A stretch of 64,000 nt of DNA, taken from positions 62,001 to 126,000 of IMG/VR virus record IMGVR_UViG_3300010885_076238, one strand, 5' to 3'. Within the stretch, counting starts at the first letter, position 1. The number at the start of each line of letters is the position of its first letter. Made by a program: the position numbers and the translations under genes. The notes beneath the pieces were generated by a model, which worked only from the letters and a program-made list of their open reading frames with translations, was not told the origin of the DNA and did not search any database. This document shows positions 30,050 to 59,098 of the stretch, in pieces.

Positions 30050-32536
30050 TTATTTTTTACTAACTTGATAGCACCAAAATTTAATTGTTTTATCATTATT
30101 ATAGCCAACCTTCACACAACTCTTAATTTGTTTAATTTTTGATAAAATCTTTGCGAATTGTGGTTGGTATTTAAAAGAACCTTCTAAATTCATAACAAAT
30201 TCTAATATAACAAAAACTAAAGACTTAATTTCTGAAAATTCTTTTGTCTGTCTCCAGTGTGGGTTTAGATCAAATCTATTACTTAGCTTCACATCTACTG
30301 ATTCTAAATTAATCATAGTTTGAATAAAGCTATCAATTACATCATTTATTTCTCTAGATTTGTATGTAGCATCCATATTATTATCATAAGAAATAACTCT
30401 AAATTTTCTTTGCATTTCTCCAAGAATTCTTACAAATCTTTTGCCGATATTGGCAACACCTGTTTGGGACTTTGAAATTCCTTCTTTTGTAGAACCGATT
30501 TTGCTAAAATCTATTTTAGAATAATCGCCATCAAAAAGTCCAGAACTTATCAATTGATCACTTAATAAGATTGCTTTATTAATTTGAATCTTTAGTTCTT
30601 CTGTAATAATGCCTGGGCCGGTCATGCTTAGTATATAATTAAGATTGGTTCCGATGTAACGAACTTTATCTTTATTGAATATTCCCTTTGTAATAAGAGC
30701 TTGATATTCATCTTCGCTTATTTTTTTGGCTTCTCTCACAAGAGAAGAACATAAAACAAAAAAGTTATTGAGCACTCTTTCAATTTTACCCATTCCATAA
30801 TATTTCACATTGCCTAATTCAGTCTGAACTTTGCTAAGATTACGCTCCAATCCCATAAACCATTTTTCTTTAGGAGTGGCATCTAGTCCAAAACGGATTT
30901 CGTCTTTTTTTTGTTTATCATAATAGTCATTGTCACACTCGCCAATTTGATTAATAATAATTGTAGAAATTAATTCGATATTTTTTGTGCTAAAAAATAC
31001 TCCCTGAGTTGGCTCTGAGGGATATATTGATCCTGTATCGTGCGAGTCTAAAAGACCATCAATCCCTAGTTTTCTTAGTAGTCCCGTCCACATTGCCCAA
31101 GGGCGATATTTTTTTTGATTACGTTCGGGCTTTTCTTTTTCCCCTCTGTTTGAACCTATGTAGCCTTTTTTTGCTATTATCATATCTGATATTTTTTTTG
31201 TGATCACATAAAGAAATTTACCGGAAACGTCCTGCTTCCCAGATGATCTCAGACTGATTAGAGACTTCATTAAAGCTTGATTCCAATCTATATCATTTTT
31301 TTCACAAAAATCTTGTAGTTCTTTGCCAAATGGAACTTTTATGGATTCTGATATTTCTTTTTTTCTTTTTGCTATTTCAACTTCAAAATTACCAATTTTT
31401 TTTACCCAATAATCTAATAATTTTTTTACTTTTTTATTTGATAATAAGAAATAACTTTCAATGTAAGTATTGAAATTAGGGCTTGCATCAATATCTCTAA
31501 AATAAGATCCTAAATTAACATAAGATCTCAGACTTTTTGAAATTTTAGTTAATTCTTCTAAAGAAATTTTATCATTTCCAAGCATTTCGAGCATTTTGCG
31601 ATCATTTTCTCTTGAAATGCCCCCAGTACCGCTAGAAAAAGGCTCGGTTTTTATCATTTTATTTGCAAAATTTCTAACCTCGTCAGACAATGCAAAAGAA
31701 TTATTGTCTAAATTAGTGAATAAAGGTAGTTTTTGCGAAGAACCGGGCCATGGCGATAAACTAGAAATCAAATTATCAAGACCAAAATTAATCATCATTC
31801 TTGTTGCGTTGAAAGTCAATTCAGAAATTATTCTTTCAAAATTTTCTTTCGATGAAAGTTTTTCAATTCTATCAACAGAATATTTTTTAATTGATTTTTC
31901 TTCTTCTGAGTAGTCGTCCATCTCGCTCTTAGCAGTTGATACTGTGTTATGATAGAAATTATAAACAATATCATCGCTATACAATTCTGCTCCGCTTTTT
32001 AATAATTCCTCTTTTATTGTTTTTTTTAATAATTTAATTTTTAAATTTTCATGCTTGTAAATATAGTTGCTTATTTGTTGTTTTATGGTTTTGTTTATTT
32101 CATCAACATCGGAAATTTCTTTTATTTCTCCTTCTCCTGGCTTCATAGAAATATAACTTTCTTTATTTTTAATTTTAAAAATGTGAAGATACTTTCTGCT
32201 TCCGGCCATAGGAACGCCTGAGACATTCTTTTTAATAATATACTCAAGAGGAAAAGCATATAATCCTAAAGGAGTTCCACCATCGTCAGCAGAATATTTT
32301 GGCCCAAGTCTTTGAACACAAGAAAAATTACCCCATATGTCTTCGGGCTTAGTGTTATTGTTCACAGCTTTTTCAAAGACAGTCTTTATTTGTTTGATTT
32401 TTTCAAACTTTCTGTAAGGTTTTCCTGTTTGAGGATCGGCTATAGATGGATCAACTCTGCCCACGGCTCTTGAAAGGAGTTGTGGTTCTTCTATCAAATA
32501 TGTGTCTATTGGTTGAAAATATTCTTTAAAATTCAT
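30050..32536 (-). CDS. large putative internal head protein with split ART-like domain (paralogue of 34149-36446)
   Basis: MNFKEY...LIEE N-peptide; TPLGLYAFP and LGIDG..D...IYPSEPTQGVFF blocks shared with the paralogue. Confidence 0.6.
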   Translation of the reverse strand: MNFKEYFQPIDTYLIEEPQLLSRAVGRVDPSIADPQTGKPYRKFEKIKQIKTVFEKAVNNNTKPEDIWGNFSCVQRLGPKYSADDGGTPLGLYAFPLEYIIKKNVSGVPMAGSRKYLHIFKIKNKESYISMKPGEGEIKEISDVDEINKTIKQQISNYIYKHENLKIKLLKKTIKEELLKSGAELYSDDIVYNFYHNTVSTAKSEMDDYSEEEKSIKKYSVDRIEKLSSKENFERIISELTFNATRMMINFGLDNLISSLSPWPGSSQKLPLFTNLDNNSFALSDEVRNFANKMIKTEPFSSGTGGISRENDRKMLEMLGNDKISLEELTKISKSLRSYVNLGSYFRDIDASPNFNTYIESYFLLSNKKVKKLLDYWVKKIGNFEVEIAKRKKEISESIKVPFGKELQDFCEKNDIDWNQALMKSLISLRSSGKQDVSGKFLYVITKKISDMIIAKKGYIGSNRGEKEKPERNQKKYRPWAMWTGLLRKLGIDGLLDSHDTGSIYPSEPTQGVFFSTKNIELISTIIINQIGECDNDYYDKQKKDEIRFGLDATPKEKWFMGLERNLSKVQTELGNVKYYGMGKIERVLNNFFVLCSSLVREAKKISEDEYQALITKGIFNKDKVRYIGTNLNYILSMTGPGIITEELKIQINKAILLSDQLISSGLFDGDYSKIDFSKIGSTKEGISKSQTGVANIGKRFVRILGEMQRKFRVISYDNNMDATYKSREINDVIDSFIQTMINLESVDVKLSNRFDLNPHWRQTKEFSEIKSLVFVILEFVMNLEGSFKYQPQFAKILSKIKQIKSCVKVGYNNDKTIKFWCYQVSKK

Positions 32537-32607
32537 GTATCTATATCTATGTTTTTACTGAAATAAATTAGTCGATCTATTTCGTATATAAATTTATAGG
32601 AGATTCT

Positions 32608-32994
32608 ATGTATAAAATTGTATTGCGATCTATATTTTACCATTGGTTTGCCTTATTTATTGGAATTTCCATAGGTTTTATAGCTAATTCGGAGTGGGTT
32701 GGGGACAAATATGCGATTGTAGAAAGATCGGTCAGAAACATATTTTTCCCAATTCAATATGACGAGAATATTGAGGCTTTTGTAAAACAGGCTGGAAAAG
32801 TGAGGTTGTGGTCTAGTTTAGAATGCCCCGAGGATTTTGTTGTATTAGACGATTTGGTAAAGGGCGAAGAATTTTATTGGGCATTGTATAAATATAAGGA
32901 TAAGAACGGAAAAGAAGTCAAGGATGTTGGAAGCATTAGAGTCAAATGGAAAACTTGGGAATATTATTATAAGCTAGATGAAATAATTAAATAA
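32608..32994 (+). CDS. membrane-anchored hypothetical protein
   Basis: AGGAG RBS; N-terminal TM helix. Confidence 0.7.
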   Translation: MYKIVLRSIFYHWFALFIGISIGFIANSEWVGDKYAIVERSVRNIFFPIQYDENIEAFVKQAGKVRLWSSLECPEDFVVLDDLVKGEEFYWALYKYKDKNGKEVKDVGSIRVKWKTWEYYYKLDEIIK

Positions 32995-33003
32995 AGGTAA
33001 AAT

Positions 33004-33273
33004 ATGAAAACTTTCAATGAATGGCTAAAAAACAGAGTATTGAGCGAAGGCAATCAAAAAAACGCAAGAGAACTCAGAGCGTTATTAGAAAAAGAGGGCT
33101 TTATTTTTGTGCGAGACGGTGACGAGCTTATAATGAAAAAAGACGACATTCCAATCACAGTAAGCAAACAATCGGATCGCGTTTTGCCAAGAAAACTTGT
33201 AAAAACCGTCCTGCGAGATTGGCAAAGAAACAAGGATAAAATAGACGCACTAAGAGCCAGACGAGCCGTATAA
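33004..33273 (+). CDS. putative internal head protein with HicA-like fold
   Basis: MKTFNEWL...LSE then ARELRALLEKEGF..R......ITV.....LPRKLVKTVLRD; TAAATA at 32988-32993. Confidence 0.55.
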   Translation: MKTFNEWLKNRVLSEGNQKNARELRALLEKEGFIFVRDGDELIMKKDDIPITVSKQSDRVLPRKLVKTVLRDWQRNKDKIDALRARRAV

Positions 33274-33294
33274 TATTATTTACAAATTCCTTAA

Positions 33295-33319
33295 AATAAT
33301 AATTTATTATATGCGTTAT
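33295..33319 (+). promoter_or_regulatory. phage promoter motif AATAAT-N13-CGTTAT
   Basis: Exact consensus, AGGAGG 5 nt downstream. Confidence 0.75.
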
Positions 33320-33338
33320 ACCATAGGAGGAAACTTTT

Positions 33339-33701
33339 ATGTGGCTTTTTACTAAATATGGGTTTTTCAGTGTTGTTTGTGCAAGAAAGAACAATGGTTT
33401 GAGTTCTGACGTAGATACAGAAACTCTTATGATCAGAGCTAGATCAAAAAATCATCTTGAAAATTTGATCAATAGTTTTCAAGATTTGAATGATTGTCAA
33501 ATAGCAACAACACACGACACAGATTACCGATACAGAATCTTTGTTCCAAAGAAGATATGGAGCAATGTGATGCTAGAATTATCAAGTGAAATTGATTATG
33601 GAAACTTCAAGAGCAAAGTTCACAAATCTTTGCAAGACCAAGAATTTTCTCATTGCTTGGGTGATATTTGGAGTGTAATGTATAGGTATCAAGATGAGTA
33701 A
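33339..33701 (+). CDS. hypothetical phage protein
   Basis: MWLFTKYGFFSVV...IRAR...DYRYR...IDYGNFK. Confidence 0.75.
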   Translation: MWLFTKYGFFSVVCARKNNGLSSDVDTETLMIRARSKNHLENLINSFQDLNDCQIATTHDTDYRYRIFVPKKIWSNVMLELSSEIDYGNFKSKVHKSLQDQEFSHCLGDIWSVMYRYQDE

Positions 33702-34152
33702 GGTTCTATTTTTGCACGGGATGTTTGGTCAAAATAGTTCCAAGCCTTATTTTATAAGATCTTTAGGATTAGAGGTTTTTCATCCATTTTTGAATGATTG
33801 GAGCTTTGAAGATTCTATCAAAGAAGCCCAAAAACATCTAAATGAAACAGAGCCAGACCTAATCGTAGGTTCTTCAAGAGGCGGTGCGGTTGCGATGAAC
33901 ATTGATTCAAAAAATATACCAATTATTTTATTGGCTCCTGCTTGGAGGTTTTTTGGCAAGAAAGATCGAACCAAAGATAATGCAACTATAATTCATAGCG
34001 AAAATGACAACTTGATTCCGATTAGTGATAGCATAAAATTATCAGCAAATTCAAATTGCAAATTGGTAATTGCAGGAAAAGACCATAGACTAAATTGCGA
34101 AGATGGCAAAAATGCAATCAAAAAAATAATTAATACATATTTGAACTGCTAA
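33694..34152 (+). CDS. small alpha/beta hydrolase
   Basis: FLHG, GSSRGG nucleophile elbow, IHSEND, DHRL. Confidence 0.85.
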   Translation: MSKVLFLHGMFGQNSSKPYFIRSLGLEVFHPFLNDWSFEDSIKEAQKHLNETEPDLIVGSSRGGAVAMNIDSKNIPIILLAPAWRFFGKKDRTKDNATIIHSENDNLIPISDSIKLSANSNCKLVIAGKDHRLNCEDGKNAIKKIINTYLNC

Positions 34153-36446
34153 AGTATATCGGGGTCAAACATTTTAGAGCCATCTGGGTTAAGCGGCTCA
34201 GAGTCCTCGCTTGGCTTTCTAGGTGGTTTTGGCTTCTTATGCTGCGGATGCGTAGTCATTCTAAGTTGAGATGGCTTCAAAAACTCTGCGTTTTGGGGAA
34301 TATCGGGAGTGTATGGAAACATTCCAATCTTTATCAAATATCCAATAACATAAGAATGGTGTTCTATAATCTTTCTTAATTGCTCAAGACTCAACCCAGA
34401 AGAATTGGTTTGCAATTCATCAGCTTGAACGGTTCCAGATATTGGCTCGACTAGGTTCCCTTTATTATCATAAGAATAGCCATCCCCATAACGATCACAA
34501 AACATTATCAAATATCTATCAGAATCGACTTTTTCTAAAACTTTCCCGTAGTCATAATTTTGAAATGGCTTTATGAGCCTTACGACCGCTCCAATTTTTG
34601 GAATTAATAATTTTTCTATATTTGTCTTATTGGCAAGTAAAGTTGAAGACACTCTCTTAATTTCTTGTTCTATTGCATTTTTTAAATCTTGATCACTATC
34701 GGGATTATCTCTTTGTTTCATGAATGAATCAAATAAAATTTGAAATTTTGTTAAAAGTTTCATTGAGCTTAATGGCGATTCTCCTTCATATCTAATACTA
34801 TCTCGATAATTTCCAACAAGCTCTGAAAATCCTTTTTTGATTCCTTTAAGAAATCTATTTGCAGGCGTATCTTCAATATCCCAATCTAAAGGTTCTCCTG
34901 ATTTTCTTTTTTGATTTCTTGTTTGTTTTGGATGCTGCCAACTTTGTGAAAGATCTCTTGGGTTAAATTTATTATTTTGTAAGACTTTCAAAAGTTTAAA
35001 TTGCCTTGGATTAAAAAATGCTCCCTGAGTCGGCTCTCCACTGTGAATAGTGGATGTTCCTTCTGTATCTATTACTCCATCGATTCCCAATTCCCTTAAT
35101 ATTTTTGTCCACAATGCCCATTGTCTAATTGAACTATCGTCTTTATCAGTAACTTCTTGAGACATTATTTTTGTTATTTGATAAACGAAAGCCCCAGAAA
35201 TTGTGCTTAGTCCCCGTCGAGACATTTCTTCAACAGTTGTTGCTAAAACTTCCAGCCAATCAATTTTGTACTTATCACAGAGTTGTTTGATCTTATGATC
35301 AAGGGGGAAGTGAATATCTTTTAAATATTTGCCTTTTTGTGAATTAAATTCATCAAGACTTTTTTCTAGTGACTTTTTGATTTTTTTAGAAATCATTAAA
35401 GCCTTATCAAAAATTTCTGGATTTTTGAGAAATTCTGTTTGGGTTGCCATTTTACTGCGATCTTCGATGTAAGGCGTTCCTATTCTAATATTACCATCCG
35501 CCCCAGAAAAATTCGCTAGACTCATTATTTTATCGATATTAAAATTAAAAAATGATTCTTCTTCGTTTTCTTCATTCCAATTCAAACCATATAATTTTAT
35601 TAAGCTTTGCTTGTCTTCATCACCTGCACTTTTTATTATTTGTATTGCTCCACTAGACAAATAAATTCTAAGCTTTTCTTCATCTAACTTGCCAATGTTC
35701 ACAAATTGAGTTGGGCCATTGCTGGATCCATATCTTTTAATTATCATGTTATCCACAAATTTTTTAATTTCTTTTAATATTTCTGATTTTTCTGGAATGT
35801 CTAAAAGTTTTAATTTTTCTTTTATGCCAAAATAGCCACCTTGCAAACTATCATAATAAACATTTGAATGTAAATCGCCCAATGAATCTTCTATTAGCTC
35901 AAGAATTACTGGGGCATTTCTAAGATTAGATCGCACGAACTTTTTAAGAAAATCAATTTTTTTTGAAAAAACTTTTTTGAAATTTTTGCTAAGAAAATCT
36001 TTCTCTTCTCTTATATTTTTACGAATAGACTCTAAATTAGAAACTTCCATTTGCCCTCTTTTCATAGAAACTACATTATCACTAACCATCTCAAATATAA
36101 GAATGTATTTTCTACTGTATCCATAAGGGACTCTTAATCCGTTTTCTAAAACGTAATTTATAGGATAAGCATAAAGGCCCAAAGGGGTTTGTCCGTTTTT
36201 TGCGTTATAATAAATACCCAATCTTTGATAATCACTAAAACTAGCCCAAATTTTATCTTTAGGAACCTTTAGTTTGCTTACTATATTTTCTAGTTCTTTC
36301 TTTTTATTATTAGCTCTCCAAGGCTTGCCGGTTTCTGGCTCTACGAGCGAACTGTCTACGTCACCAATTCTTTTTTTAACTATGGCTTCAACGATTGTTT
36401 CAAAATAACTTGCGTCATATGTTGTGTAATATTCTTTGAAATTCAT
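34149..36446 (-). CDS. large putative internal head protein with split ART-like domain (paralogue of 30050-32536)
   Basis: MNFKEY...IVEA; TPLGLYAYP; LGIDGVIDT...IHSGEPTQGAFF. Confidence 0.6.
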   Translation of the reverse strand: MNFKEYYTTYDASYFETIVEAIVKKRIGDVDSSLVEPETGKPWRANNKKKELENIVSKLKVPKDKIWASFSDYQRLGIYYNAKNGQTPLGLYAYPINYVLENGLRVPYGYSRKYILIFEMVSDNVVSMKRGQMEVSNLESIRKNIREEKDFLSKNFKKVFSKKIDFLKKFVRSNLRNAPVILELIEDSLGDLHSNVYYDSLQGGYFGIKEKLKLLDIPEKSEILKEIKKFVDNMIIKRYGSSNGPTQFVNIGKLDEEKLRIYLSSGAIQIIKSAGDEDKQSLIKLYGLNWNEENEEESFFNFNIDKIMSLANFSGADGNIRIGTPYIEDRSKMATQTEFLKNPEIFDKALMISKKIKKSLEKSLDEFNSQKGKYLKDIHFPLDHKIKQLCDKYKIDWLEVLATTVEEMSRRGLSTISGAFVYQITKIMSQEVTDKDDSSIRQWALWTKILRELGIDGVIDTEGTSTIHSGEPTQGAFFNPRQFKLLKVLQNNKFNPRDLSQSWQHPKQTRNQKRKSGEPLDWDIEDTPANRFLKGIKKGFSELVGNYRDSIRYEGESPLSSMKLLTKFQILFDSFMKQRDNPDSDQDLKNAIEQEIKRVSSTLLANKTNIEKLLIPKIGAVVRLIKPFQNYDYGKVLEKVDSDRYLIMFCDRYGDGYSYDNKGNLVEPISGTVQADELQTNSSGLSLEQLRKIIEHHSYVIGYLIKIGMFPYTPDIPQNAEFLKPSQLRMTTHPQHKKPKPPRKPSEDSEPLNPDGSKMFDPDIL

Positions 36447-36452
36447 AAATTT

Positions 36453-37067
36453 TTAGGAGGTAGTAGGAATATTTTTTGGAATGGTTATGCCCAAACTAAT
36501 CAGGTGTTTATCTATTGCTAATTTAACAATTGGCAAAGGAATTCCGTGGCCGATATTACTATAGGTTGTTAGTCTAAATCCATAATTATATGCCAACTCA
36601 ATACTATCTTCTACTGGAACCGTAATGTCTTTTTTTCCATGAATAACTATGGTATCACTTGGTAATTTGTCTGGTTTTGAATTGAATATTTTCCAAGCAG
36701 GGCATCCTAAAACAAATTTAGCGTTTGGGTATCTGTAGCCTAATTTCATTGCAACAGCCCCGCCTTGACTTGTTCCAACAACCACATCTGGCACAAAATT
36801 TTTAATTTCTTCATCATGCTTTTTAACATTATCCTGCATATGCTGACTTCCCCAAGTATCTACCTTTTTTCTAATCATAAAAAATGGCTGATACCTCTTA
36901 ATTCTACCCAAATAAGCAGCAAAATAGTGATTTGTAGTGCCTATGGATTTAACATCATAGCCCAGAGTAGCTAGTTTTTTGGGTTTAGAGCCGCTACTAT
37001 TCATTCCGGTAAACCATAAGACCCTTGGTGGTCTTTCTTTTTCTTGAAGCCAGGTTTTAAATTCCAT
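36453..37067 (-). CDS. alpha/beta hydrolase with capsid-targeting-like N-terminus
   Basis: Preferred start MEFKTWLQE at 37067; GTSQGG, IHGKKD, GHG triad. Confidence 0.8.
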   Translation of the reverse strand: MEFKTWLQEKERPPRVLWFTGMNSSGSKPKKLATLGYDVKSIGTTNHYFAAYLGRIKRYQPFFMIRKKVDTWGSQHMQDNVKKHDEEIKNFVPDVVVGTSQGGAVAMKLGYRYPNAKFVLGCPAWKIFNSKPDKLPSDTIVIHGKKDITVPVEDSIELAYNYGFRLTTYSNIGHGIPLPIVKLAIDKHLISLGITIPKNIPTTS

Positions 37068-37138
37068 ATTTAATATATATATTGTAGTAGATAAAAAGTG
37101 CAAAAAACAATGATTTAATAAATAACTAGGCACTCATA

Positions 37139-37146
37139 TATAAATA
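37139..37146 (+). promoter_or_regulatory. T4-type late promoter TATAAATA
   Basis: Exact T4 gp55 consensus, 16 nt upstream of ATG 37163, with GAGG RBS between. Confidence 0.65.
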
Positions 37147-37162
37147 TAAAAAAGAGGGTTGA

Positions 37163-38764
37163 ATGATTAATTTTTATGAATTCTTAAATATTATAAACGT
37201 CAAAAACGAAGCTTTTGAAAAAGATTTATTCGACCCTCATCCAGATAACTCCGATCCAGAAGGCGGCTCATCTCACGATGTTTACAGACTAAAAAATAAA
37301 AAGGGAGAAGACTTTTGGAGCAAATCTGCTGCGTCTAACCTACAGACGGTTAATGAGTATTTGGCTTGGAAAATTTATAAATTATTTGACATTAGCGTTG
37401 CCTCAAACGCTCATTTAGTTGTTAATAATAATAAAATGAGATTGGTTTCTAGCCAAGTTTCTGGAAAGCAAATTCCTTTGGACTATAGTTCAAGTTTCTC
37501 AAGTGCTTTATCTGGTTCTGATATTCATAAAGGATTTTTTGTTGATGCCTTTTTAGGACATTGGGATGTTGTTGGAAACGCTCCTAGATCGAATTTATTT
37601 ATAGATGATCAAAAACGGGTTGTAAGAATTGATTTGGGCGGTTTAGATTTTAGAGCTACTGGCCCAAGAAAAAGCAAAACAATTCCTGGCTCTTGGGGTG
37701 GAGAAGTTGGAGAATTAAAAACAATGGGCGGATTAGGTGGCCCAATAATGAAAAGTAATGCTTCTGCCGTGTTGGGAAATCTACAAAAAGATCAACTTTT
37801 AGAATCTGCTAAGATTTTTTCAAGAGTAGGTTGGTCACAAATAGAAAACGTACTGAAGCAAGTAGAAGCAGAGGTAGTAGATATTTCCAAAGAACATAAC
37901 TTGCCTGAAGTCGCAGAAGAAACTTCTAAATACATAAAAGAAATAGAAGAAGTTCTATACAGTCGTTTTCAAGACATGCACAAAAAAATAAAAGAACTAG
38001 GATTGGATCAATTTTCAGAATGGCAAAAACTAGCAGGAGTGCAAATCTTTTCAGAAGAAATAGCGACTTACAATCAAATCGAAGATAAGGAGATGCTCTA
38101 CAAGACATATTACGACACATATGCAGATGCAAATGCAAAAGATGGCAAAGGTCTAAAGCCTTGGAGCAAAAGCGATTTTGAATGGCGAGCAGAAAAATGG
38201 ACATATGCAGGAATACTTCCAAAAGAAGGAGTTCCTTTTGAGCAATTAGGATTCATTACAGCAAGAGAAAAAGGCGGGGTCTTTAAATTAACTGGTATGC
38301 AAGGCCCAAACACAAAAGCAAAAATAAAAGGATTGATGGAGCTTGCTGCTTTAGCAAGACCAATTTGGGGAGCGATGGATAAAGACTTTACAGAAAGACT
38401 TAAGAAATTAGGATTTTTAACTCCTCCGAAAAAAATCATGACTTTCCTTCTTCCTGTTATACAAAGTGATCCTCAATTTTCTTCAGGTGGCGAATGGGGA
38501 AATCTGAACGATGATGGTGGAATAAATTTTGAATTAAGCGGCATAGGAAGCACTATCAAATATTTTACAGCTAACAAACAATTTTATAAATTGATCATAG
38601 ACAAAATGGTTTCTAAAGGTAAGATTGATGCAAAAATGATTAAATTATTAGAAAAATGGCCGACCATGCCAGAAGCAATGAAGCAAATGTCTTTATCGTT
38701 TTTGCCAAAAAACTTAGACTTGGACGTTGAATCTTTAGATTGGCTATCGTTTGTTTTAGCTTAA
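37163..38764 (+). CDS. putative internal head protein: HipA/PI3-4K-like kinase domain + possible GNAT-like domain
   Basis: MINFYEFL N-peptide; WSKS, NEYLAWKIY, GHWDVVGN...N, RIDLG; C-domain GFITARE...LKKLGF. Confidence 0.6.
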   Translation: MINFYEFLNIINVKNEAFEKDLFDPHPDNSDPEGGSSHDVYRLKNKKGEDFWSKSAASNLQTVNEYLAWKIYKLFDISVASNAHLVVNNNKMRLVSSQVSGKQIPLDYSSSFSSALSGSDIHKGFFVDAFLGHWDVVGNAPRSNLFIDDQKRVVRIDLGGLDFRATGPRKSKTIPGSWGGEVGELKTMGGLGGPIMKSNASAVLGNLQKDQLLESAKIFSRVGWSQIENVLKQVEAEVVDISKEHNLPEVAEETSKYIKEIEEVLYSRFQDMHKKIKELGLDQFSEWQKLAGVQIFSEEIATYNQIEDKEMLYKTYYDTYADANAKDGKGLKPWSKSDFEWRAEKWTYAGILPKEGVPFEQLGFITAREKGGVFKLTGMQGPNTKAKIKGLMELAALARPIWGAMDKDFTERLKKLGFLTPPKKIMTFLLPVIQSDPQFSSGGEWGNLNDDGGINFELSGIGSTIKYFTANKQFYKLIIDKMVSKGKIDAKMIKLLEKWPTMPEAMKQMSLSFLPKNLDLDVESLDWLSFVLA

Positions 38765-38845
38765 ATATTAATTATTTTTACCAGCTTGATTTGAATCTGC
38801 GTATAGAGTAAGATACCGTCTTCATTAAATTTTCAAGGAGGAAAA

Positions 38846-46521: not shown

Positions 46522-46524
46522 ACT

Positions 46525-49137: not shown

Positions 49138-49146
49138 GGAAATAAA

Positions 49147-49671: not shown

Positions 49672-49692
49672 TATTAAATTAAAGGAGAAACA

Positions 49693-50049: not shown

Positions 50050-50067
50050 TTATTAAGGAATTAAAAG

Positions 50068-50292: not shown

Positions 50293-50315
50293 AAATTAGA
50301 AATGGATAATAACTA

Positions 50316-50630: not shown

Positions 50631-50656
50631 TAATTAACCCAACGCGTTATGCCACT

Positions 50657-50899: not shown

Positions 50900-50901
50900 A
50901 T

Positions 50902-51138
50902 ATGAATATTCTTTCAAAACAACAACATTTGTTTGTTAAAAATGCTGTTGATAAACATTTGGGATTTAAAGAAAATCACAACTACTCAGAAAACGAAGAA
51001 ATCAAAATTAAAAAAGTTGTTGCAAACTTTGTGAACTCAATCAATGAAGAAGCAAGTGTGCCTAAAGTATTGGATGGATATTTAGATGATTATCTCGATT
51101 TTCTCGTAATTTGTGCTTGTGCCGATTCTGTGGAATAA
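50902..51138 (+). CDS. hypothetical protein
   Basis: Operon ORF. Confidence 0.6.
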   Translation: MNILSKQQHLFVKNAVDKHLGFKENHNYSENEEIKIKKVVANFVNSINEEASVPKVLDGYLDDYLDFLVICACADSVE

Positions 51139-51290
51139 AAATAAACATGAGTGAAACCGAAAATTATTCTCTGAGTGAGTTGGCTAATTCTTTGGCAACT
51201 GCATCAAATATTGCCAAAATATTAGGAATATAGCCTAGTTACTACTGGCGATTCGTTTAATCTTTTAAGGGAAGTTTTGGAGAATAAATA

Positions 51291-51638
51291 ATCAAAATAA
51301 TCCCTCTACAAGACTGTAAAGACAGACACCTTTACATAATTAATTCTAGAAATTTTAATCTTGGTGTTTTTGACGCTAAGAACAGAGATTTTATTGGAAT
51401 AAGAATAAAAATTGGAGATACATTTTTAGACAGAGAAAACCACAGTATTGGCTGTGTCAAAGTGTTTGAAGAAATAGAAAATATTCCAGACCATATTGAA
51501 CTAAAAATAGGACACCGCTCTGAAACTGAACTTAATGTTTGGGGAGATCGTTTATGGGTGGAAAATAAAGATCTTTTTAACTATCTGGAAGATAAGTGCC
51601 GTAATCTATTAGCAAAGGATAATGACAAAATACAGTAG
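51291..51638 (+). CDS. 115-aa ORF with apparent ATC start (not in track)
   Basis: IKIIPLQDCKDRHLYIINSRNFNLGVFD...FIGIR...*; GGAG 8 nt upstream; TAATC junction. Confidence 0.55.
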   Translation: MKIIPLQDCKDRHLYIINSRNFNLGVFDAKNRDFIGIRIKIGDTFLDRENHSIGCVKVFEEIENIPDHIELKIGHRSETELNVWGDRLWVENKDLFNYLEDKCRNLLAKDNDKIQ

Positions 51639-51737
51639 AATAAAAAAGCTCAATCTCTTGTCTCAAGTTCATTTTTGGCACTACAACCCCTGAAATAATA
51701 TTTGATCTGATCCGCTATCCTCAATGAAGGTAACACC

Positions 51738-52691
51738 ATGAACGCTAAAGAATCATACTTTCACGCAAAAAATGTTCTCAAAGGAAGAAGCAAAGACTTT
51801 GAAGATCATATATTAAAAACCAAATGGAATTGTTGGTCAGAAGATCATAAGTATTACAACCTTTATTTTAAAAATATACTCAAAGGCAGATGGGAAGAAT
51901 TAGAAAATCGCCTTGTAAAAGACATTGTGGCTCCAAAAAAAGGAGATATGCTTTCGCACAACGAGTGGAACATAGCAATAAATTATTGTGAAAATATTAA
52001 TGAAAGATGCAATGAATTAGAAGAAAAAATATTATCTCTTGTTAAAAATTGGCGCTTTGATGATATGGCAATAAACTATTGTGAAAAAGTCATCAAAGGA
52101 AGATGGGAAGAATTAGAAGAAATTATTAAAAAAGAGCCAAATTCCCTTTCTCGCGCACACACTTGCTACTTGTACGCAGAAAGAATCATAAAAGGCAGAT
52201 GGAAGGAAGCAGAAGAACTTATTAAAGAAGAACCAAGAGTCGCTGTTGATTATGCTAGAGAAATAATCAAAGGCAGATGGAATGAAGCAGAGCCATACAT
52301 TCTAAAAAATGAATTATGGGCATTCAATTATGCAAGAGACATAATCAAAGATAGATGGATCGAAGCAGAAAATATTATTACAGGCTCCGCACAAAAATAT
52401 TACAAACAACTTGTTAAAAATAAAATTCTCGACCTGTTACAAAAAAAAGATTATGACAATGTTTTGAAATACGTTGATTATAAGCACTTCACTAATATCA
52501 TTAAAAATGCAGAGAAAAAGCACCACATTCCAGATGCTATCCGAAATGCGATGATGGCATCCTGCATCACAGGAAACGACCAAAACAGCACCAGCTTTTT
52601 CAAACAAGAAAAAATCTTCAAGGAAAAAATGAAAAATTTCTTGAAAGATTATAAAGGATTACTTGTTGATGATGTAATCGACAAGCTATAA
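51738..52691 (+). CDS. helical-repeat protein, LP-HN-M family
   Basis: IKGRWxE[L/A]E units; IPDAIRNAMMA; terminal VDDVIDKL. Confidence 0.85.
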   Translation: MNAKESYFHAKNVLKGRSKDFEDHILKTKWNCWSEDHKYYNLYFKNILKGRWEELENRLVKDIVAPKKGDMLSHNEWNIAINYCENINERCNELEEKILSLVKNWRFDDMAINYCEKVIKGRWEELEEIIKKEPNSLSRAHTCYLYAERIIKGRWKEAEELIKEEPRVAVDYAREIIKGRWNEAEPYILKNELWAFNYARDIIKDRWIEAENIITGSAQKYYKQLVKNKILDLLQKKDYDNVLKYVDYKHFTNIIKNAEKKHHIPDAIRNAMMASCITGNDQNSTSFFKQEKIFKEKMKNFLKDYKGLLVDDVIDKL

Positions 52692-52733
52692 AATAATAAT
52701 TAATATCATTGGTTATCAAGCAGAGGAACAAAT

Positions 52734-53552
52734 ATGACCCCACAAGAAGCATATTCTGAATTAATTAATCTTTTCAATAGCTCCCGACGAGGAATCGTCT
52801 TTTACTTTAAAGATTTTATTAATGCACCCGAACACAAAAAAGAAGTAGATGAACTAAAAAAAATAATTATTCAAGACCCCTTCACCGCTTCAGATTTTGC
52901 AATAAGTTCCGGCGAAAGATGGATCGAAGCAGAAGAAATTATTAAAACAAATCCAAAAATATTAAGCCATTATTTTTGTATGTTGTTTACAAGGGAATTC
53001 AAAAGAAGATGGAATGAAGCAGAAGCAGATATTCTAAAAGGAACTCCTAATAGTGTTTGGGATTATTATAAACCTGTGCAGTATCATGTGTCAAACTCTT
53101 TCCCAGACAATGTTTGGATAGAAGCAGAACCAGTTTTTGAAAAGAAAATGAGCATCTTTCATCAATATGTTCTAACCACAAAAAAGCCCAACAAAACCTA
53201 TGAACAAAAAATATTAAATGATCCAAGTTCTAAATATAATCCCAAATACATCTATGACTACTCTTCCAAAGTTCTACAAAGCAGATGGAAAGAAGCAGAA
53301 CATATAATATTAAAAAATCCAGACTACGCAGCAAAATATTGCTCGAAATTTAAGATGGTAGTTCCAGAAGAAATTCATAACCAAATAGTTGCAGAAGTCG
53401 CCTTAACCGACAAATCTTCCTCTTTCAGAAAGAAATTTCTCCAAGATCAAACCAAAAGAAAAGAAAAATTTTTAGAATATCTCAAAGAACTTGTTAGTAG
53501 TAATGTTATTAACAAAGATAGCACAGTTGAAGAATTAATAAATAATATTTAA
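52734..53552 (+). CDS. helical-repeat protein, LP-HN-M family
   Basis: RWIEAE units; VPEEIHNQIVA; terminal TVEELINNI. Confidence 0.85.
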   Translation: MTPQEAYSELINLFNSSRRGIVFYFKDFINAPEHKKEVDELKKIIIQDPFTASDFAISSGERWIEAEEIIKTNPKILSHYFCMLFTREFKRRWNEAEADILKGTPNSVWDYYKPVQYHVSNSFPDNVWIEAEPVFEKKMSIFHQYVLTTKKPNKTYEQKILNDPSSKYNPKYIYDYSSKVLQSRWKEAEHIILKNPDYAAKYCSKFKMVVPEEIHNQIVAEVALTDKSSSFRKKFLQDQTKRKEKFLEYLKELVSSNVINKDSTVEELINNI

Positions 53553-53571
53553 TCCCAACCGTTATAACACT

Positions 53572-54441
53572 ATGACAACTCTAAAAATCCCCAAGTTCAG
53601 AAATGCCAAAAGAGCAGCAGAGTTTGCTGTTAAACACAAAGTTACACTAAACGAAGAAACAGAAAAATTAATAGCACAAGACGCTGTAGCGTCCTACAAC
53701 TACGCATATCACGTTAAAGGCAAATTTGAACTTGCTGAACCCTTAATCGCTAAAGATTTGCATTTAGCAGTAATCTACGCCATCTATATTCTAAAAGGTA
53801 GATTCTATCTGGCCGAAAAAATGATTGCAGAATCTATCACAGAATATGGCTTGAAAAAAGAAAATTTCTATAACGCACCAGCATTTAATTACGCAAGAAG
53901 TGTTTGCCAAGGAAGATTTGAACTATTAGAACCATTAATTATTAATGATCCTGATCTTTGCTATCATTACGCCGCAGATGTTATTGGAGGAAGATGGGAG
54001 GAAGGAGAACCAACAATAGCAAAAGATTTACAACTTTCTCTGAATTATGCAAGATATGTATTAGACGGAAGATTTGAACTAGCAGAACCCTTGCTTGCAC
54101 AAGACTCAGACTACGCTTTTGAATACGCATCAGATGTTATTAACAGATATATAACTAACTGCGACTACAGAGACAGAACAAATAAACTTGCAAAAAGATT
54201 TGAACTTGGTGAAGAAGCTATTTCTAAAAATATTAAGAAATTAGCAAAATATATCGATCTAACCAAACAAGAACTAACAGGCACTATTCACAACATGATG
54301 ATCGCAAGAAGCCTAACCGATGACCTTCTTTCAAAAACATACTTCGATTACATCAGCGATAATAAAAAAACACTACTAGAGTATTTGAGCAAATATCCCG
54401 AAAATATGACCGTAAAAGAAATAACCCAATCTCTTAGTTAA
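53572..54441 (+). CDS. helical-repeat protein, LP-HN-M family
   Basis: PKFRNAKRA N-motif; GRFELAE units; LTGTIHNMMIA; leaderless promoter at 53541-53565. Confidence 0.85.
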   Translation: MTTLKIPKFRNAKRAAEFAVKHKVTLNEETEKLIAQDAVASYNYAYHVKGKFELAEPLIAKDLHLAVIYAIYILKGRFYLAEKMIAESITEYGLKKENFYNAPAFNYARSVCQGRFELLEPLIINDPDLCYHYAADVIGGRWEEGEPTIAKDLQLSLNYARYVLDGRFELAEPLLAQDSDYAFEYASDVINRYITNCDYRDRTNKLAKRFELGEEAISKNIKKLAKYIDLTKQELTGTIHNMMIARSLTDDLLSKTYFDYISDNKKTLLEYLSKYPENMTVKEITQSLS

Positions 54442-54469
54442 TAATAATTATTCCAAACCGTTATGAGGT

Positions 54470-55174
54470 ATGGAAGAACTAAACGAAATTATCATCTGCT
54501 CAATCCTCAACAAACTGAAAATTGATGCTATCGCCACTGTTTCAGAACAACTCAGTTGGGCAGATGCAGATGAAGATGGAAAAGTAGACGGCGGTGTGCA
54601 TTATTTTTTGGAACTTGACGCACTAAAAGAAACAAGAGAAAGATTAGTAAAAGAAATTCTTGAAGGATTCAATCGTCCAGAAATTCGAAATTATAGATTC
54701 AACAATAGCATCAAATACTCAAAAGTGCATCAGTTACAAGAAAACGAAAAACACATAAAGGAAATAAAATTTTTCGGAATCAACAGCAAAAATAAAACAA
54801 TAGAACCAATAAGTGAAAAATTAGATAAAAATATTAAAGATCTACTGCCAGAAAAAGTATACAATTTTATTATTGCAAAATGTTTGGTAGATGAAAATCA
54901 TAAACATATACTCAGTCTAAATGGATTAGATTTAATTCTCAATTATTGGAAAAATAATCTCCCCGATACAGATAATGATTGTTGGTCGGGTGACGGAAAT
55001 TCACAATATTTTTGGGAAGTGTTGTTCAAAGAAAACAACCAAATAAACGTAGATTATGGAGGCGAATTTGGAGCAGGCGAACTAAATTTCTATAGCCACA
55101 GTCAAGATTTATTAAAATATGATTTTTGGAAGGTTTTTACCGAAAATTATCCAAAAATTACTAATAATTCATAA
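54470..55174 (+). CDS. hypothetical protein (paralogue of 57301-57921)
   Basis: MEELNEIII vs MQEFNEIII; LPEKVYNFIIA; promoter at 54440-54464. Confidence 0.75.
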   Translation: MEELNEIIICSILNKLKIDAIATVSEQLSWADADEDGKVDGGVHYFLELDALKETRERLVKEILEGFNRPEIRNYRFNNSIKYSKVHQLQENEKHIKEIKFFGINSKNKTIEPISEKLDKNIKDLLPEKVYNFIIAKCLVDENHKHILSLNGLDLILNYWKNNLPDTDNDCWSGDGNSQYFWEVLFKENNQINVDYGGEFGAGELNFYSHSQDLLKYDFWKVFTENYPKITNNS

Positions 55175-55182
55175 ATAAAATT

Positions 55183-55761
55183 ATGACAACATTCAAAGAA
55201 TGGCTATGGAATAAAACCAAAGAACCCGAATACAAAGACTATAGTGCCTATGCCGCTGCTGTTGCTGCCAAAGAGAAAGAGCAGAAGGATAAGGATTCTA
55301 AGTACAATACAGTAAAAATAGACGATATTGAGATTCAAGGCGATGAAGACTTTATAAATAAAACAAAAAGTGCCTTATCACTATTATCACGCTCAAAAAC
55401 CTTCCAAGAAATTAAAAAATATTTAGGAAAGATAAAACAACACCGAGCGTCAGGAATGGTTCCTTATGCAAAACCACCCACTTTTGAAGTCGCAAAACCA
55501 ACATACTCAAGCGGTTCAAAATGGTACGCATCTGGTATCGCACACGATACCTACCACTCTTATCTTTATCACAACAATCAAGAATGGCATGGCAAAAAAG
55601 CAGAACAAGAATGTATTGCAATACAAATAAAGGTACATGACGAAATAGTTGGGAAAAGAATAATTCCAAACCCAATAGATCACCTTAATAAAAGATATCT
55701 GCAATCAATAAAAGATAATCCTACCCATCAAGACATTCCTTACGAAAAACGAGATTGGTAA
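55183..55761 (+). CDS. putative internal head protein, zincin-like (HDxxH)
   Basis: MTTFKEWL; WYASGIAHDTYHS...AEQEC; ATAAATA at 55171-55177. Confidence 0.6.
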   Translation: MTTFKEWLWNKTKEPEYKDYSAYAAAVAAKEKEQKDKDSKYNTVKIDDIEIQGDEDFINKTKSALSLLSRSKTFQEIKKYLGKIKQHRASGMVPYAKPPTFEVAKPTYSSGSKWYASGIAHDTYHSYLYHNNQEWHGKKAEQECIAIQIKVHDEIVGKRIIPNPIDHLNKRYLQSIKDNPTHQDIPYEKRDW

Positions 55762-55852
55762 ATTCATAAAAATAATTCTATATATGAATTAATAATAATT
55801 AATCAAATTCGTTATAACACTATGGCCCAAAACATGAACCCAAAGATAATCA

Positions 55853-56068
55853 ATGGATAACGAAATGGTTAGTATGATTCAAACCTTAATCGATAAGTTC
55901 TCTAGTGAGCAAAAACGATTAGAACAAAAGATTATAAAAGGCTCTATTAAAGAATCTGTCTCAAACGATGAACTTTTAGCCCTAGCAAAAGACTTGGTTT
56001 CTGAAATCAAAAAGATCAAAAGAATCATACTTACGCTAGAAGATATTAAAAGTATGATGAATAATTAA
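55853..56068 (+). CDS. coiled-coil hypothetical protein
   Basis: Promoter at 55791-55815. Confidence 0.6.
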   Translation: MDNEMVSMIQTLIDKFSSEQKRLEQKIIKGSIKESVSNDELLALAKDLVSEIKKIKRIILTLEDIKSMMNN

Positions 56069-56329
56069 TTGGATAACACGATGAGAAAACGAATTTTGTC
56101 TGATGATGAAATTATAGAATCTATTAATATTTTCTATAATTCAAATCAATTACAAGAAAATTACGCAAGAATATCCGTTATGCGAAGAATTTTAAATAAA
56201 CCCCTACACGAAAATATAGCAAACGTGGCAGAAGAATCAATTACTGTCGCCTGCAAAGAAACACCCAAAATTATCGACCTTATACAAAACAAAGATACCA
56301 AAGAAAAAATATTACTACTCGTATTATAA
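56069..56329 (+). CDS. hypothetical protein
   Basis: Abuts upstream stop. Confidence 0.55.
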   Translation: MDNTMRKRILSDDEIIESINIFYNSNQLQENYARISVMRRILNKPLHENIANVAEESITVACKETPKIIDLIQNKDTKEKILLLVL

Positions 56330-56521
56330 TCATTTCTTATCGCTGCTGATTAGATTTAAATAACCGCCGCAATTCCTACATTTGGCTTTACCAGCATTTA
56401 TATCATACATTTTGGCCTTTTCTTTGTTTCCGCATCTACTGCACTCAGCATTACGATGGCCTTGAGGAGCATTTTTAGTTTTCGCTTCTAATATTTGTTG
56501 AAACTCATAAAAATTAATCAT
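56330..56521 (-). CDS. small zinc-ribbon protein with capsid-targeting-like N-terminus
   Basis: MINFYEFQQILEA; CSRC...CRNC; TAAATA (minus, 56540-56545) and AAGGAG. Confidence 0.7.
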   Translation of the reverse strand: MINFYEFQQILEAKTKNAPQGHRNAECSRCGNKEKAKMYDINAGKAKCRNCGGYLNLISSDKK

Positions 56522-56573
56522 AATATCTCCTTTTATTTTTATTTAGATTTGTGCAAATAAAAATCAACTTGAA

Positions 56574-56606
56574 AATATTAATAATTCCAAACCGTTATAC
56601 AGTATG
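56574..56606 (+). repeat. 33-bp promoter/start repeat identical to 57271-57303
   Basis: AATATTAATAATTCCAAACCGTTATACAGTATG at both sites; the last 23 nt also at 57927-57949. Confidence 0.9.
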
Positions 56607-57272
56607 AGATACGAAAAAGTAGAACCAAGAGAAATTAAATACTACTACAGCAACTATATTGAGAACGAAAATGTAACAAACTTCTTCGCACAAAAATACG
56701 CGGGAGATAAAACCACCACAGAAGAACTAAACCTACTACAAATTCTTATCTCAAATGTTACAAAAAATATACTTGAAAAAACAAAATCAACCCAAGATTG
56801 TATAGTATTTGACCCTACCACAGAAGATTTTTTTGTAACCGATCTAGATTCTTTCCAAAATCAACGCAGTTTTTTCTACCGAAGCGACTTTACTGATTTT
56901 TCAACTAAATGGAACGAAAATTGTTTACCAAGTTTACATAATGCAAAATTAATAAAAAATCGAAAAGTAGATACGCTGCTTTTTGATAATGTTCGACAAC
57001 ACCTAGATGAAAAAGTATTTAATGCTCTATTGGCTACCGCCGCTTTTTGCCAAGATGAACTCAAAAATTACACAAATGTTTCTTGCGGCTTCTTATTCAA
57101 ATTCTTATCCACTCAGCACTACAACGCACATAAAGAAAAATATTATGAGCAAATAAGTCAAGAATATTACATTTGCAAACAGTACGAAGGACAAGTTGTT
57201 ATAGCAAACAAAAAAACAGTAAATTTAATGCCTATCGAATGGAATGATGTAAATATTGATTATAACCCTTAA
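56604..57272 (+). CDS. hypothetical protein
   Basis: Leaderless; degenerate LDEKVFNALLA motif. Confidence 0.7.
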   Translation: MRYEKVEPREIKYYYSNYIENENVTNFFAQKYAGDKTTTEELNLLQILISNVTKNILEKTKSTQDCIVFDPTTEDFFVTDLDSFQNQRSFFYRSDFTDFSTKWNENCLPSLHNAKLIKNRKVDTLLFDNVRQHLDEKVFNALLATAAFCQDELKNYTNVSCGFLFKFLSTQHYNAHKEKYYEQISQEYYICKQYEGQVVIANKKTVNLMPIEWNDVNIDYNP

Positions 57273-57300
57273 TATTAATAATTCCAAACCGTTATACAGT

Positions 57301-57921
57301 ATGCAAGAATTCAACGAAATTATTATTAAGTCAATATTTAAGAAATTAAATATTGATTGCCTCATTCTAAGCCAAAAAGATTTCGTCGCTCACGATAAAG
57401 AAGATTGCTGGGTAAATCACAAACTAAGAAAGAAAATCTTCGCCCTAAAAAATGACAAAGTGTCCCTCGTAGAACTCAGCCTAAAAGACTCATTGCCCGA
57501 AAAAGTCTACAACTATATCTTGGCAGAATCCTTGGCTAAAGATTCTAAAGAATTATTAAAAAGCCCAAGAGAAATCCTTATGGATATGTGGAAAAACTTT
57601 CGTCCAGACCTAGATGATGAATTATTTGATGATGATTGCGGCAACGACGAAAGAAACGAAAGAAACGGAGCAATGGAATTTATAAGTTATTGGATCTTCT
57701 TGTATCTAGAAAATAATGAAGTAAAAATTAAATACTCTGTGCGTGACGTTAAACGCTCAGGATGGAACAACGAAGAAGTAAAAATTCCAGATATAATATC
57801 AATAAGAACATCAGAAGATGACCTCAAATACCAAGAAAAAACCAACCTTATAATCTCAGAAGATGACCTCAAAAACCCTATGTGGGAAAAAATCTGCTGC
57901 AAAGATAATTGGATAAAATAA
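57301..57921 (+). CDS. hypothetical protein (paralogue of 54470-55174)
   Basis: Leaderless ATG 57301; LPEKVYNYILA. Confidence 0.75.
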   Translation: MQEFNEIIIKSIFKKLNIDCLILSQKDFVAHDKEDCWVNHKLRKKIFALKNDKVSLVELSLKDSLPEKVYNYILAESLAKDSKELLKSPREILMDMWKNFRPDLDDELFDDDCGNDERNERNGAMEFISYWIFLYLENNEVKIKYSVRDVKRSGWNNEEVKIPDIISIRTSEDDLKYQEKTNLIISEDDLKNPMWEKICCKDNWIK

Positions 57922-57966
57922 TAATTATTCCAAACCGTTATACAGTATGAACCAAAAGGAAGCCAA

Positions 57967-58593
57967 ATGACTAAATACCCACCTATCGATCCAAAAGAAG
58001 TCTACGACAGCCTCTATACCCGTTCTAAGAATATTGTAGACTGGTATGAGTTTCTCGGAGATCACAATATCGAAACAATCTCATACTTAGACCCTTGCAC
58101 TATGGAATCTAAGGGAAATAAATTCGTTGTTTGTGACGATCCTGCCGGTGGACGTTCTCTTAAAATCCCTGAGCAACTTGCCCACGAAATTAGAGGAAAT
58201 CCTTATTTTGATGTTGAAGCAACCGATGCTGACCTTCCAAGAATCGAAGCCGCACTAGACAATCTCTCAGAACAAGATAAAGAAATTGTCGAAAAAGCAA
58301 AAGAATACGGCGACGGTTCTGGAAATAGAAACACAGAAGTTTCTCTCACCGTTAATCTATATTGCAATTGGGACGGCGATCTATTATTTCCAACAGTAAT
58401 CGTAGACGAAATAGCCAATCACGATACCCTCAAATATGGGGTAAATTGGGATAAAGCAAAAGAACTTGAACATAAGGCGAAAAAAGAAGTTCTTAATAAA
58501 GTCGCCCAATATAAGAACATCGTTATTAAAATCGCCACAGAACTTAAAATTAACTCACACGATGTTCATGAGTATATTATGGGATGGGGATGA
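57967..58593 (+). CDS. hypothetical protein
   Basis: AAGGA RBS; promoter at 57917-57941. Confidence 0.75.
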   Translation: MTKYPPIDPKEVYDSLYTRSKNIVDWYEFLGDHNIETISYLDPCTMESKGNKFVVCDDPAGGRSLKIPEQLAHEIRGNPYFDVEATDADLPRIEAALDNLSEQDKEIVEKAKEYGDGSGNRNTEVSLTVNLYCNWDGDLLFPTVIVDEIANHDTLKYGVNWDKAKELEHKAKKEVLNKVAQYKNIVIKIATELKINSHDVHEYIMGWG

Positions 58594-58717
58594 TGAAAAT
58601 TAGATTTCAAGATGAAATTATGCAAAAGCATTACGAGTCTTTAATAAAAGATGGGTATCATTGGAAAATAGCAGAAATCAAAACAATAAAAAGATTTGAA
58701 GAATATGACCAATAAGA

Positions 58718-59098
58718 TTACCCCAATGCTTTTTTAATTTGTCCACTATCCAACGCAGGACTTCTTAATTTCGCAACAACATAATCCCTAAGTTGCTTAC
58801 TACTCACTTTTCTCAGTTCTCCCACAATGCCATTGTTTTTTATCACAGGCAGTTCCATCAAATTATCCACGCCCAAAGGCTCTGTAGCATCGTAATACCT
58901 TCCATCGTAATAAATGAAAGCATGAGCATCATCTGCAAATAATTGACCCGATTTTAAATAATATTTAGCAGCCAATGCCCAATTATAACAATGACCACGA
59001 TTAATAATCTCTGGACTCATTCCAGAAAATATTTTTTCACTTATAATCGATAAATCAACCGATTCTAATATGTTGTAAAATTTATAAAAATTAATCAT
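58718..59098 (-). CDS. Cys-His-Asp (transglutaminase/papain-like) protein with capsid-targeting-like N-terminus
   Basis: MINFYKFYNILES; NRGHCYNWA, HAF, YYDA; ATAAATA on minus strand at 59105-59111. Confidence 0.6.
   Translation of the reverse strand: MINFYKFYNILESVDLSIISEKIFSGMSPEIINRGHCYNWALAAKYYLKSGQLFADDAHAFIYYDGRYYDATEPLGVDNLMELPVIKNNGIVGELRKVSSKQLRDYVVAKLRSPALDSGQIKKALG

Follow-up and report, generated by a model that had tools for sequence, protein, structure and literature searches.

A candidate T4-type capsid-targeting leader on otherwise unrelated proteins of a large uncultured phage

Introduction

Why do eight open reading frames (ORFs) with mostly unrelated bodies begin with the same short peptide? 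The question is raised by a stretch of 64,000 nucleotides (nt), hereafter the window, which corresponds to positions 62001-126000 of the 204,311-bp contig Ga0133913_10000027 in Joint Genome Institute (JGI) metagenome 3300010885 (IMGVR_UViG_3300010885_076238) and has a GC content of 33%. The source is a large uncultured freshwater phage, and four other JGI samples hold near-identical contigs. Neither megablast nor tblastn found a near relative of the window among 50,697 isolated phage records, and the same searches of isolated phages were empty for the region under study, its largest protein of 828 amino acids (aa) and two members of the family of that protein. The matches of the ligase, RnlA and helicase genes gave no taxonomic placement.

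In the internal proteins (IPs) of T-even phages, a single conserved capsid-targeting sequence precedes bodies that are diverse (PMC3012670), and the leaders span 10-20 residues (PMC5694885). For IPI, IPII and IPIII of T4, the capsid-targeting sequence is credited to Mullaney and Black (1996) in PMC3012670 and PMC5694885. An earlier note on the window, made from the letters alone, had read the common peptide as a signal of this kind, cut off after an (I/L)xE site, and the eight proteins as an enzymatic arsenal delivered with the phage DNA. We here report that the peptide is carried by at least 11 otherwise unrelated predicted proteins and co-segregates with a cleavage-site-like motif and a separate promoter class. 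We consider it reasonably probable that the common N-terminus serves as a capsid-targeting leader of the T4 type, which a gp21-type protease takes off. The phage thus probably delivers several enzymes into the host along with its DNA.

Results

A leader peptide enriched far above composition controls

All eight ORFs were present with the coordinates, strands and N-termini that the earlier note had given (Table 1), five of them on the minus strand. Between 52.9 and 64 kb of the window, the JGI gene calls contain two minus-strand genes, and both are leader candidates. In each ORF, the ATG is the first start past the upstream stop, and 0-8 open codons separate the two. The ORF at 36453 has an alternative start, GTG 37133, but ATG 37067 agrees better with the promoter box.

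The leader takes the form M-x(0-2)-F-x-E-(W/F/Y)-(L) and spans ~10 residues. The parent contig was read over ~190 of its 204 kb (record 5.2-135.6 kb and 153-202 kb, with close relatives bridging the gap, by exact-protein look-ups and viral-contig scans), and the gene statistics cover 287 called genes on ~160 kb of it. In a scan of the kind that the earlier note had suggested for the whole genome, 9 of these 287 genes matched the pattern ^M.{0,3}F.E[WYF]. The expected number was 0.65 from how often the core tetrapeptide occurs within proteins and ~0.3 from all other six-frame ATG-started 10-mers (3/3215), and the Poisson p of the excess is ~3e-8. As both controls predict only 0.3-0.65 matches against the nine found, the excess is not an effect of composition. 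Looser variants of the pattern widen the tagged set, as we call the genes that carry the leader, to 11-15 genes. The independent events are fewer (~7), because 30050 and 34149 are paralogous and the three MINFY starts share their DNA: ATGATTAATTTTTAT opens 37163, 56330 and 58718, and ATGAATTT(T/C)AAAGAATAT opens the two paralogs.

The peptide class is prefixed to complete domains. The HicA domain of 33004 begins only at residue 21, and the alpha/beta-hydrolase-like protein of 36453 has a paralog without the leader at 33694, which shares 32% identity with it, begins at the first strand and is ~12 residues shorter. Elsewhere, a separate protein of ~300 aa that starts with an F-K-x-(Y/W)-F of its own corresponds to the C-terminal half of 37163 (533 aa).

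Likeness to the internal proteins of T4

The resemblance to the T4 capsid-targeting peptide could be read directly from the T4 record (NC_000866), in near-identical form: ipI starts with MKTFKEF, ipII and ipIII start with MKTYQEFIAE-A, and MKTFNEWL of the window departs from the ipI leader by conservative changes only. When the window pattern was applied to the ATG-started ORFs of T4 of at least 40 aa, nine matched, and five of these matches lie at annotated gene starts, namely those of ipI, ipII, ipIII, gene 61.1 and gene 46.2. T4 gene 61.1 (start at record position 19130, minus strand) encodes the 54-aa hypothetical gp61.1, with an IP-like leader and then IKE.

In both phages, one leader stands before unrelated protein bodies, M-K-T-(F/Y)-x-E-F-(I) in T4 and M-x-(N/T)-F-x-E-(W/F/Y)-(L) here, followed by (I/L)xE. 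The two systems differ in number and cargo, with at least 11 tagged proteins here against three in T4, and many large predicted enzymes against small basic proteins. They also differ upstream of the genes, as the promoter box often abuts the ATG here, whereas the T4 ip genes have no TATAAATA within 45 nt upstream. Furthermore, the present phage cannot be recognised as a T-even relative from the DNA read.

A cleavage-site-like motif behind the leader

An (I/L)xE tripeptide lies within 21 residues in six of the eight window ORFs, in agreement with the earlier note. At residues 5-24, it was found in 8 of 11 tagged proteins against 64 of 276 others (23%; p=0.001), and control tripeptides at the same place showed no enrichment. 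The copy of 37163 in the window lacks the motif, but five orthologs of 68-77% identity carry (I/L)NE or LKE at residues 8-13.

Two promoter classes

The upstream boxes reported for seven of the ORFs were all found, with exact TAAATA upstream of 33004, 37163, 55183, 56330 and 58718. The eighth ORF, 34149, lies directly downstream of tagged 36453 and is probably co-transcribed with it, because its start is 6 nt past the 36453 stop. At offsets of -16 to -10 or -27 to -22, TA[ATG]ATA precedes 9 of 11 tagged genes against 13 of 275 others (Fisher p=8e-10), in support of the association that the earlier note had wanted checked; the promoter p-values are optimistic because the class and the offsets were defined after viewing the data, yet the separation is still clear. 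Exact TAAATA at these offsets was found for 5 of 11 tagged genes and 8 of 275 others, and three of the 13 box-bearing other genes are looser variants of the leader. The TAGATA box stands so near the ATG of the 30050 gene as to suggest a leaderless or near-leaderless mRNA.

The second class, AATAAT-N13-CGTTAT, is absent from the tagged genes as had been claimed: CGTTAT precedes none of the 11, against 25 of 275 others. The ~160 kb contain 35 exact sites, every one of them on the plus strand. CGTTAT begins either at -12/-11 or at -23 to -26 from the ATG, that is, within both offset windows of TA(A/T/G)ATA; the former spacing implies leaderless mRNAs, and the latter leaves room for a Shine-Dalgarno sequence. 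Locus L013 (record 153-166 kb) holds consecutive small genes that are each preceded by a near-identical promoter, AATAATTTTCGATCC(A/G)GT(G/T)CGTTAT, as if an early gene array had been amplified in tandem. Scans for sigma-70 promoters did no better than on shuffled sequences and were uninformative for early or late calls.

The late transcription unit of T4 has TATAAATA as its -10 element, no -35 element and a gp55-type sigma factor. The TA(A/T/G)ATA box of the tagged genes, often ATAAATA, resembles this late promoter, and ATAAATA has been proposed as a late promoter in the T4-related Rak2-like jumbo phages (PMC5259590).

An ADP-ribosyltransferase-like family in T4-type head modules

The two largest tagged proteins (30050 and 34149), which share 25% identity over their length, had been called ADP-ribosyltransferase (ART)-like. 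A family profile built from both and a 38% relative, and searched against 1.84 billion proteins, gave 1797 clusters with the conserved blocks TPxGxYxYP and D..G.G.IH..EPTQ.VFF. With Pfam, the two window proteins were without a match at expect values (E) up to 0.1, and so were ten family members at E up to 0.01; no PHROG model matches the family. Short family members start with M-(K/R)-x-x-(E/D)-(hydrophobic)-(L/I)-x-E-A-R-(R/K)-N-P. The 205-aa member P0096 carries an exact TATAAATA and the start MQQTFKEFLIE-A.

The AlphaFold 2 (AF2) model of P0096 has a predicted local distance difference test score (pLDDT) of 91. With this model, Foldseek found 18 viral 'PolyVal ADP-ribosyltransferase' matches in BFVD at E up to 1e-3 (reported range 5e-6 to 1e-4). 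In PDB, the sole significant match, at E 7.5e-4, was to an ejection-protein chain in the pre-ejectosome of cyanophage A4 (PMC12002296), followed by weak matches to PARP and cholix ARTs (E 0.1-1). A compact family member was required for this result, as Foldseek with the full 828-aa model returned noise only; in that model, the leader has a pLDDT of 46-53 and the core exceeds 90. The 'ART-like' label is thus borne out by the fold of a family member. H179, Y69, E182 and Q185 are invariant or nearly so in the family and may correspond to the catalytic H-Y-(E/D/Q) triad of such ARTs; no curated ART sequence model matched 30050 or 34149. On the modelled structure, these two proteins are predicted to have an ART-like fold and are not regarded as members of the ART family.

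A scan of IMG/VR placed the family at 73 loci, many on contigs of 160-580 kb. In 39 of the 73, homologs of T4 core genes (gp23, gp20, gp21, gp17, gp4, gp46/47, gp45, gp55, gp32, gp41 and gp43) lie no more than 10 kb away. The gene order on one strand is portal-ART-protease-capsid in L052, protease-ART-capsid in L083 (the ART gene directly after the gp21 match) and terminase-ART-portal-ART-protease in L064. In L028, L070 and L072, the ART gene follows the capsid gene (gp23) on the same strand, directly so in L070; other gaps between ART and head genes reach several kb. ATAAATA occurs within 40 nt upstream of 24% of the family ORFs against 6.3% of other ORFs, and (I/L)xE at residues 4-16 in 57% against 17%. 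Altogether, a large family without a database name is placed in T4-type head modules. Five IMG/VR loci on large phage contigs (L050, L068, L080, L091 and L096) hold 3-9 tandem paralogs of this ART-PolyVal-like family per 20 kb.

The predicted cargo

For most of the cargo, PHROGs and Pfam gave no family and PDB sequence searches were empty. Among the labels of the earlier note, HicA stood, as 33004 matches Pfam HicA_toxin above the gathering cutoff (E=1.1e-6; 29.1 bits against 27) and a PHROG toxin model, and ART-like stood by fold for the two large proteins. Serine hydrolase, zinc ribbon and the YunG-like Cys-His-Asp enzyme correspond to sub-threshold matches (for 36453, a weak match to Pfam Hydrolase_4 at 2.5e-5), the kinase label to a motif read by eye and unconfirmed by search, and zincin was unsupported. 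A search for homologs of the HicA-like protein returned only itself, and no HicB antitoxin was found beside it, its neighbours 32608 and 33339 having no Pfam match. No family was found for the 55183 protein in Pfam and PDB sequence searches. As a predicted cargo, the tagged set would comprise two ART-PolyVal-like proteins and a HicA-like RNase next to an alpha/beta hydrolase, a kinase-like protein and several small proteins, all with putative activities.

Table 1. Tagged genes, promoter boxes and related features. Positions are those of the window unless given as record positions.
Feature	Position	Strand	Description
ART-PolyVal-like family protein, 828 aa	30050..32536	-	Leader MNFKEYF..., LIE at residues 14-16
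TAGATA box	32544..32549	-	7 nt before ATG of the 828-aa gene
TAAATA box	32988..32993	+	Upstream of HicA-like gene 33004
HicA-like protein, 89 aa	33004..33273	+	20-residue leader MKTFNEWL..LSE; complete HicA domain at residues 21-72
Leaderless alpha/beta-hydrolase paralog, natural control	33694..34152	+	Operon behind AATAAT-N13-CGTTAT promoter, site 33295
Paralog of the 828-aa protein, 765 aa	34149..36446	-	Leader MNFKEYY..., IVE at residues 18-20
Alpha/beta-hydrolase-like protein, 204 aa	36453..37067	-	Leader MEFKTWLQE
TATATAT box	37075..37081	-	7 nt before ATG 37067
Exact TATAAATA	37139..37146	+	Shine-Dalgarno next, then ATG 37163
Kinase-like protein, 533 aa	37163..38764	+	Leader MINFYEFL; HxDxxxxN...DLG motif read by eye
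ATAAATA box	55171..55177	+	5 nt before ATG 55183
192-aa protein	55183..55761	+	Leader MTTFKEWL, without (I/L)xE
Cys-rich protein, 63 aa	56330..56521	-	Leader MINFYEFQQILE-A; weak, sub-threshold zinc-ribbon matches
TAAATA box	56540..56545	-	Shine-Dalgarno between box and 56521 start
126-aa protein	58718..59098	-	Leader MINFYKFYNILE-S; weak, sub-threshold YunG-like (Cys-His-Asp) match
ATAAATA box	59105..59111	-	6 nt before ATG 59098
AAAATAAT-N13-CGTTAT sites (examples)	7167, 11129, 19395, 25515, 33295, 45391, 50626, 53541, 54440, 55791, 57917	+	
Tagged gene outside the window	record 13992		MKFKDFI, 199 aa
Tagged gene outside the window	record 169775		MKNFHEWLEE, 182 aa
Tagged gene outside the window	record 178454		MQNFYEWL, 139 aa
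Tagged gene outside the window	record 179987		MNFKEWL, 88 aa
Looser leader variant	record 166912		NUDIX protein, domain begins at residue 10
Looser leader variants	record 132378, 176486, 189772		

Other contents of the parent contig

The part of the contig that was read encodes sugar-modifying enzymes, helicases, ligases, ClpX and CsrA besides many small genes, and the only homologs of T4 genes on it are RnlA and DNA ligase. At record ~5-50 kb (L009, L011, L016, L019 and L024), a block of sugar genes comprises glycosyltransferases, epimerases, a sulfotransferase, UDP-galactopyranose mutase, a carbamoyltransferase and methyltransferases; the same region holds ClpX, three CsrA genes and a trypsin-like protease, a density unusual in a phage. 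A caspase-like C14 peptidase, a patatin-like phospholipase and a nucleotidyltransferase of the CCA/poly(A)-polymerase family are also encoded (L015:10424-11365 and 16681-17535; L025:8628-9953). Three adjacent paralogs on the plus strand of the window (10510-11133, 11173-12729 and 12726-13796) have another common N-terminus, MI(S/N)xI(S/N)xxY..LC.LF.F, which is unrelated to the leader.

The parent contig is likely to be a fragment of a larger genome. Eight of its proteins are common (E <1e-8) with L078 (IMGVR_UViG_3300043399_000877; 381,886 bp, 45% GC), in which the CGTTAT early-promoter pattern is absent. L078 is the best lead to the head module of the lineage.

Discussion

What could one short N-terminus do for such different proteins? 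We infer targeting, cleavage, late timing, injection and enzymatic activities from the comparisons above, in the following course. The tagged genes would be transcribed from a second, T4-late-like promoter class, TA(A/T/G)ATA, often ATAAATA, and where the box stands near the ATG, as it frequently does, the mRNA would be leaderless. The amphipathic leader of ~8 residues would dock each protein onto the scaffolding core of the assembling prohead, and a gp21-type prohead protease would then cut it off after the nearby (I/L)xE. Inside the head, the mature proteins would be kept until infection and would then pass into the host along with the DNA.

Several observations weigh against this proposal. 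On the ~190 of 204 kb read, we found no head, tail, terminase, scaffold, DNA polymerase, gp21-type protease or gp55-like gene. Three of the 11 tagged proteins are without (I/L)xE. In the ART-like family, the (I/L)xE-A could be part of a conserved structural helix and not a cleavage site, as the AF2 model of P0096 has an N-terminal helix with a pLDDT of 71-73, which is not very low. The promoter pattern and its offsets were chosen post hoc, and the putative late class of the tagged genes is assumed only from its likeness to TATAAATA. Finally, P0163, a homolog with a similar leader, belongs to a huge phage of the DnaE/bS21 type that is not itself an evident T4 relative; as a consequence, the leader may extend past evident T4 relatives.

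Three alternatives, all less likely than capsid targeting, need to be weighed. The N-terminus may be the by-product of a mobile 5' cassette, comprising a promoter and the first codons, which spread by recombination or duplication as a mark of co-regulation with no role in targeting. The DNA common within sub-groups (the ATGATTAATTTTTAT starts and the 30050/34149 starts) and the promoter box that travels with the peptide are what such a cassette would leave behind. Between the sub-groups, however, the peptide is kept while the codons differ (TTT/TTC, and TGG/TAT/TTC for the aromatic residue), the same peptide form occurs in T4 and in distant phages, and the enrichment of (I/L)xE is left unexplained. 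We therefore regard the cassette as unlikely.

The leader could instead be a signal of another kind, either an N-terminal degron or adaptor tag for a phage ClpX-type unfoldase or an enhancer of translation on leaderless late mRNAs. The contig does carry a ClpX homolog, but the motif is without precedent as a ClpX tag. Likewise, the box lies 5-7 nt from the ATG in many tagged genes, which puts the first codons at the 5' end of the mRNA, but leaderless genes behind the CGTTAT promoter do without the peptide, and it is still borne by the tagged genes 37163, 56330 and record 169775, in which a normal Shine-Dalgarno sequence precedes the start. As the head-module context of the ART family also favours the capsid, we find either version of this explanation improbable. 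Chance, helped by a short motif and by N-termini rich in N, K, F, I and Y in an AT-rich genome of 33% GC, is barely credible, since composition-keeping controls expect 0.3-0.65 matches against nine observed and three independent properties co-segregate with the motif.

Capsid targeting, the reading that we prefer, can be set beside other systems in which head-internal proteins are delivered. T4 Alt is a packaged and processed ADP-ribosyltransferase, and its paralogs ModA and ModB are unpackaged. Large ART-fold proteins are likewise predicted to be loaded into the head here, and the split between Alt and Mod is mirrored by the hydrolases, of which 36453 is tagged behind a TATATA box and 33694 is untagged in an early operon. 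Kinship of the 30050/34149 family with Alt itself was rejected, as hhalign gave a probability of 0.2% and there was no sequence or profile similarity. The modelled fold matches the PolyVal/PARP-like ART class and not the R-S-E class of Alt (PMC5512222).

ARTs of the polyvalent type have been predicted to be injected effectors that enter with the DNA (Iyer et al., 2017; PMC5512222). They are similar to the 30050/34149 family in the core fold and in being predicted to enter together with the DNA as infection begins. The difference lies in architecture: the proteins described here have a single or few domains and their own short leaders, whereas a polyvalent protein is one giant multidomain polypeptide. 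The giant phages phiKZ and SPN3US and the pre-ejectosomes of podophages (A4 gp26-29) are comparable in their many head-internal proteins, which a gp21-related protease processes after x-x-E motifs, much as is proposed here. On the other hand, the propeptides of SPN3US are mostly longer than 100 residues, with A-x-E as the cleavage site (PMC5694885), and the leaders of the present phage are T4-like, with 9-23 residues and (I/L)xE.

A leader of ~10 residues followed by (I/L)xE may even be a portable capsid-loading code across the T4 superfamily and huge phages, including those of the DnaE/bS21 type, although we put this forward only tentatively and think it rather doubtful. If true, injected effectors would become readable from metagenomic sequence, including the ART-like head-protein family of ~1800 clusters that databases leave unnamed. 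To our knowledge, only a handful of DNA-accompanying proteins are known in T4. Acting before the phage expresses any gene, such proteins are thus its first protection against the restriction, toxin-antitoxin and abortive-infection systems of the host. If the leader marks cargo in uncultured huge phages, candidate injected effectors could be listed from sequence alone, and the leader itself would be a ready tag to load foreign proteins into other phage heads.

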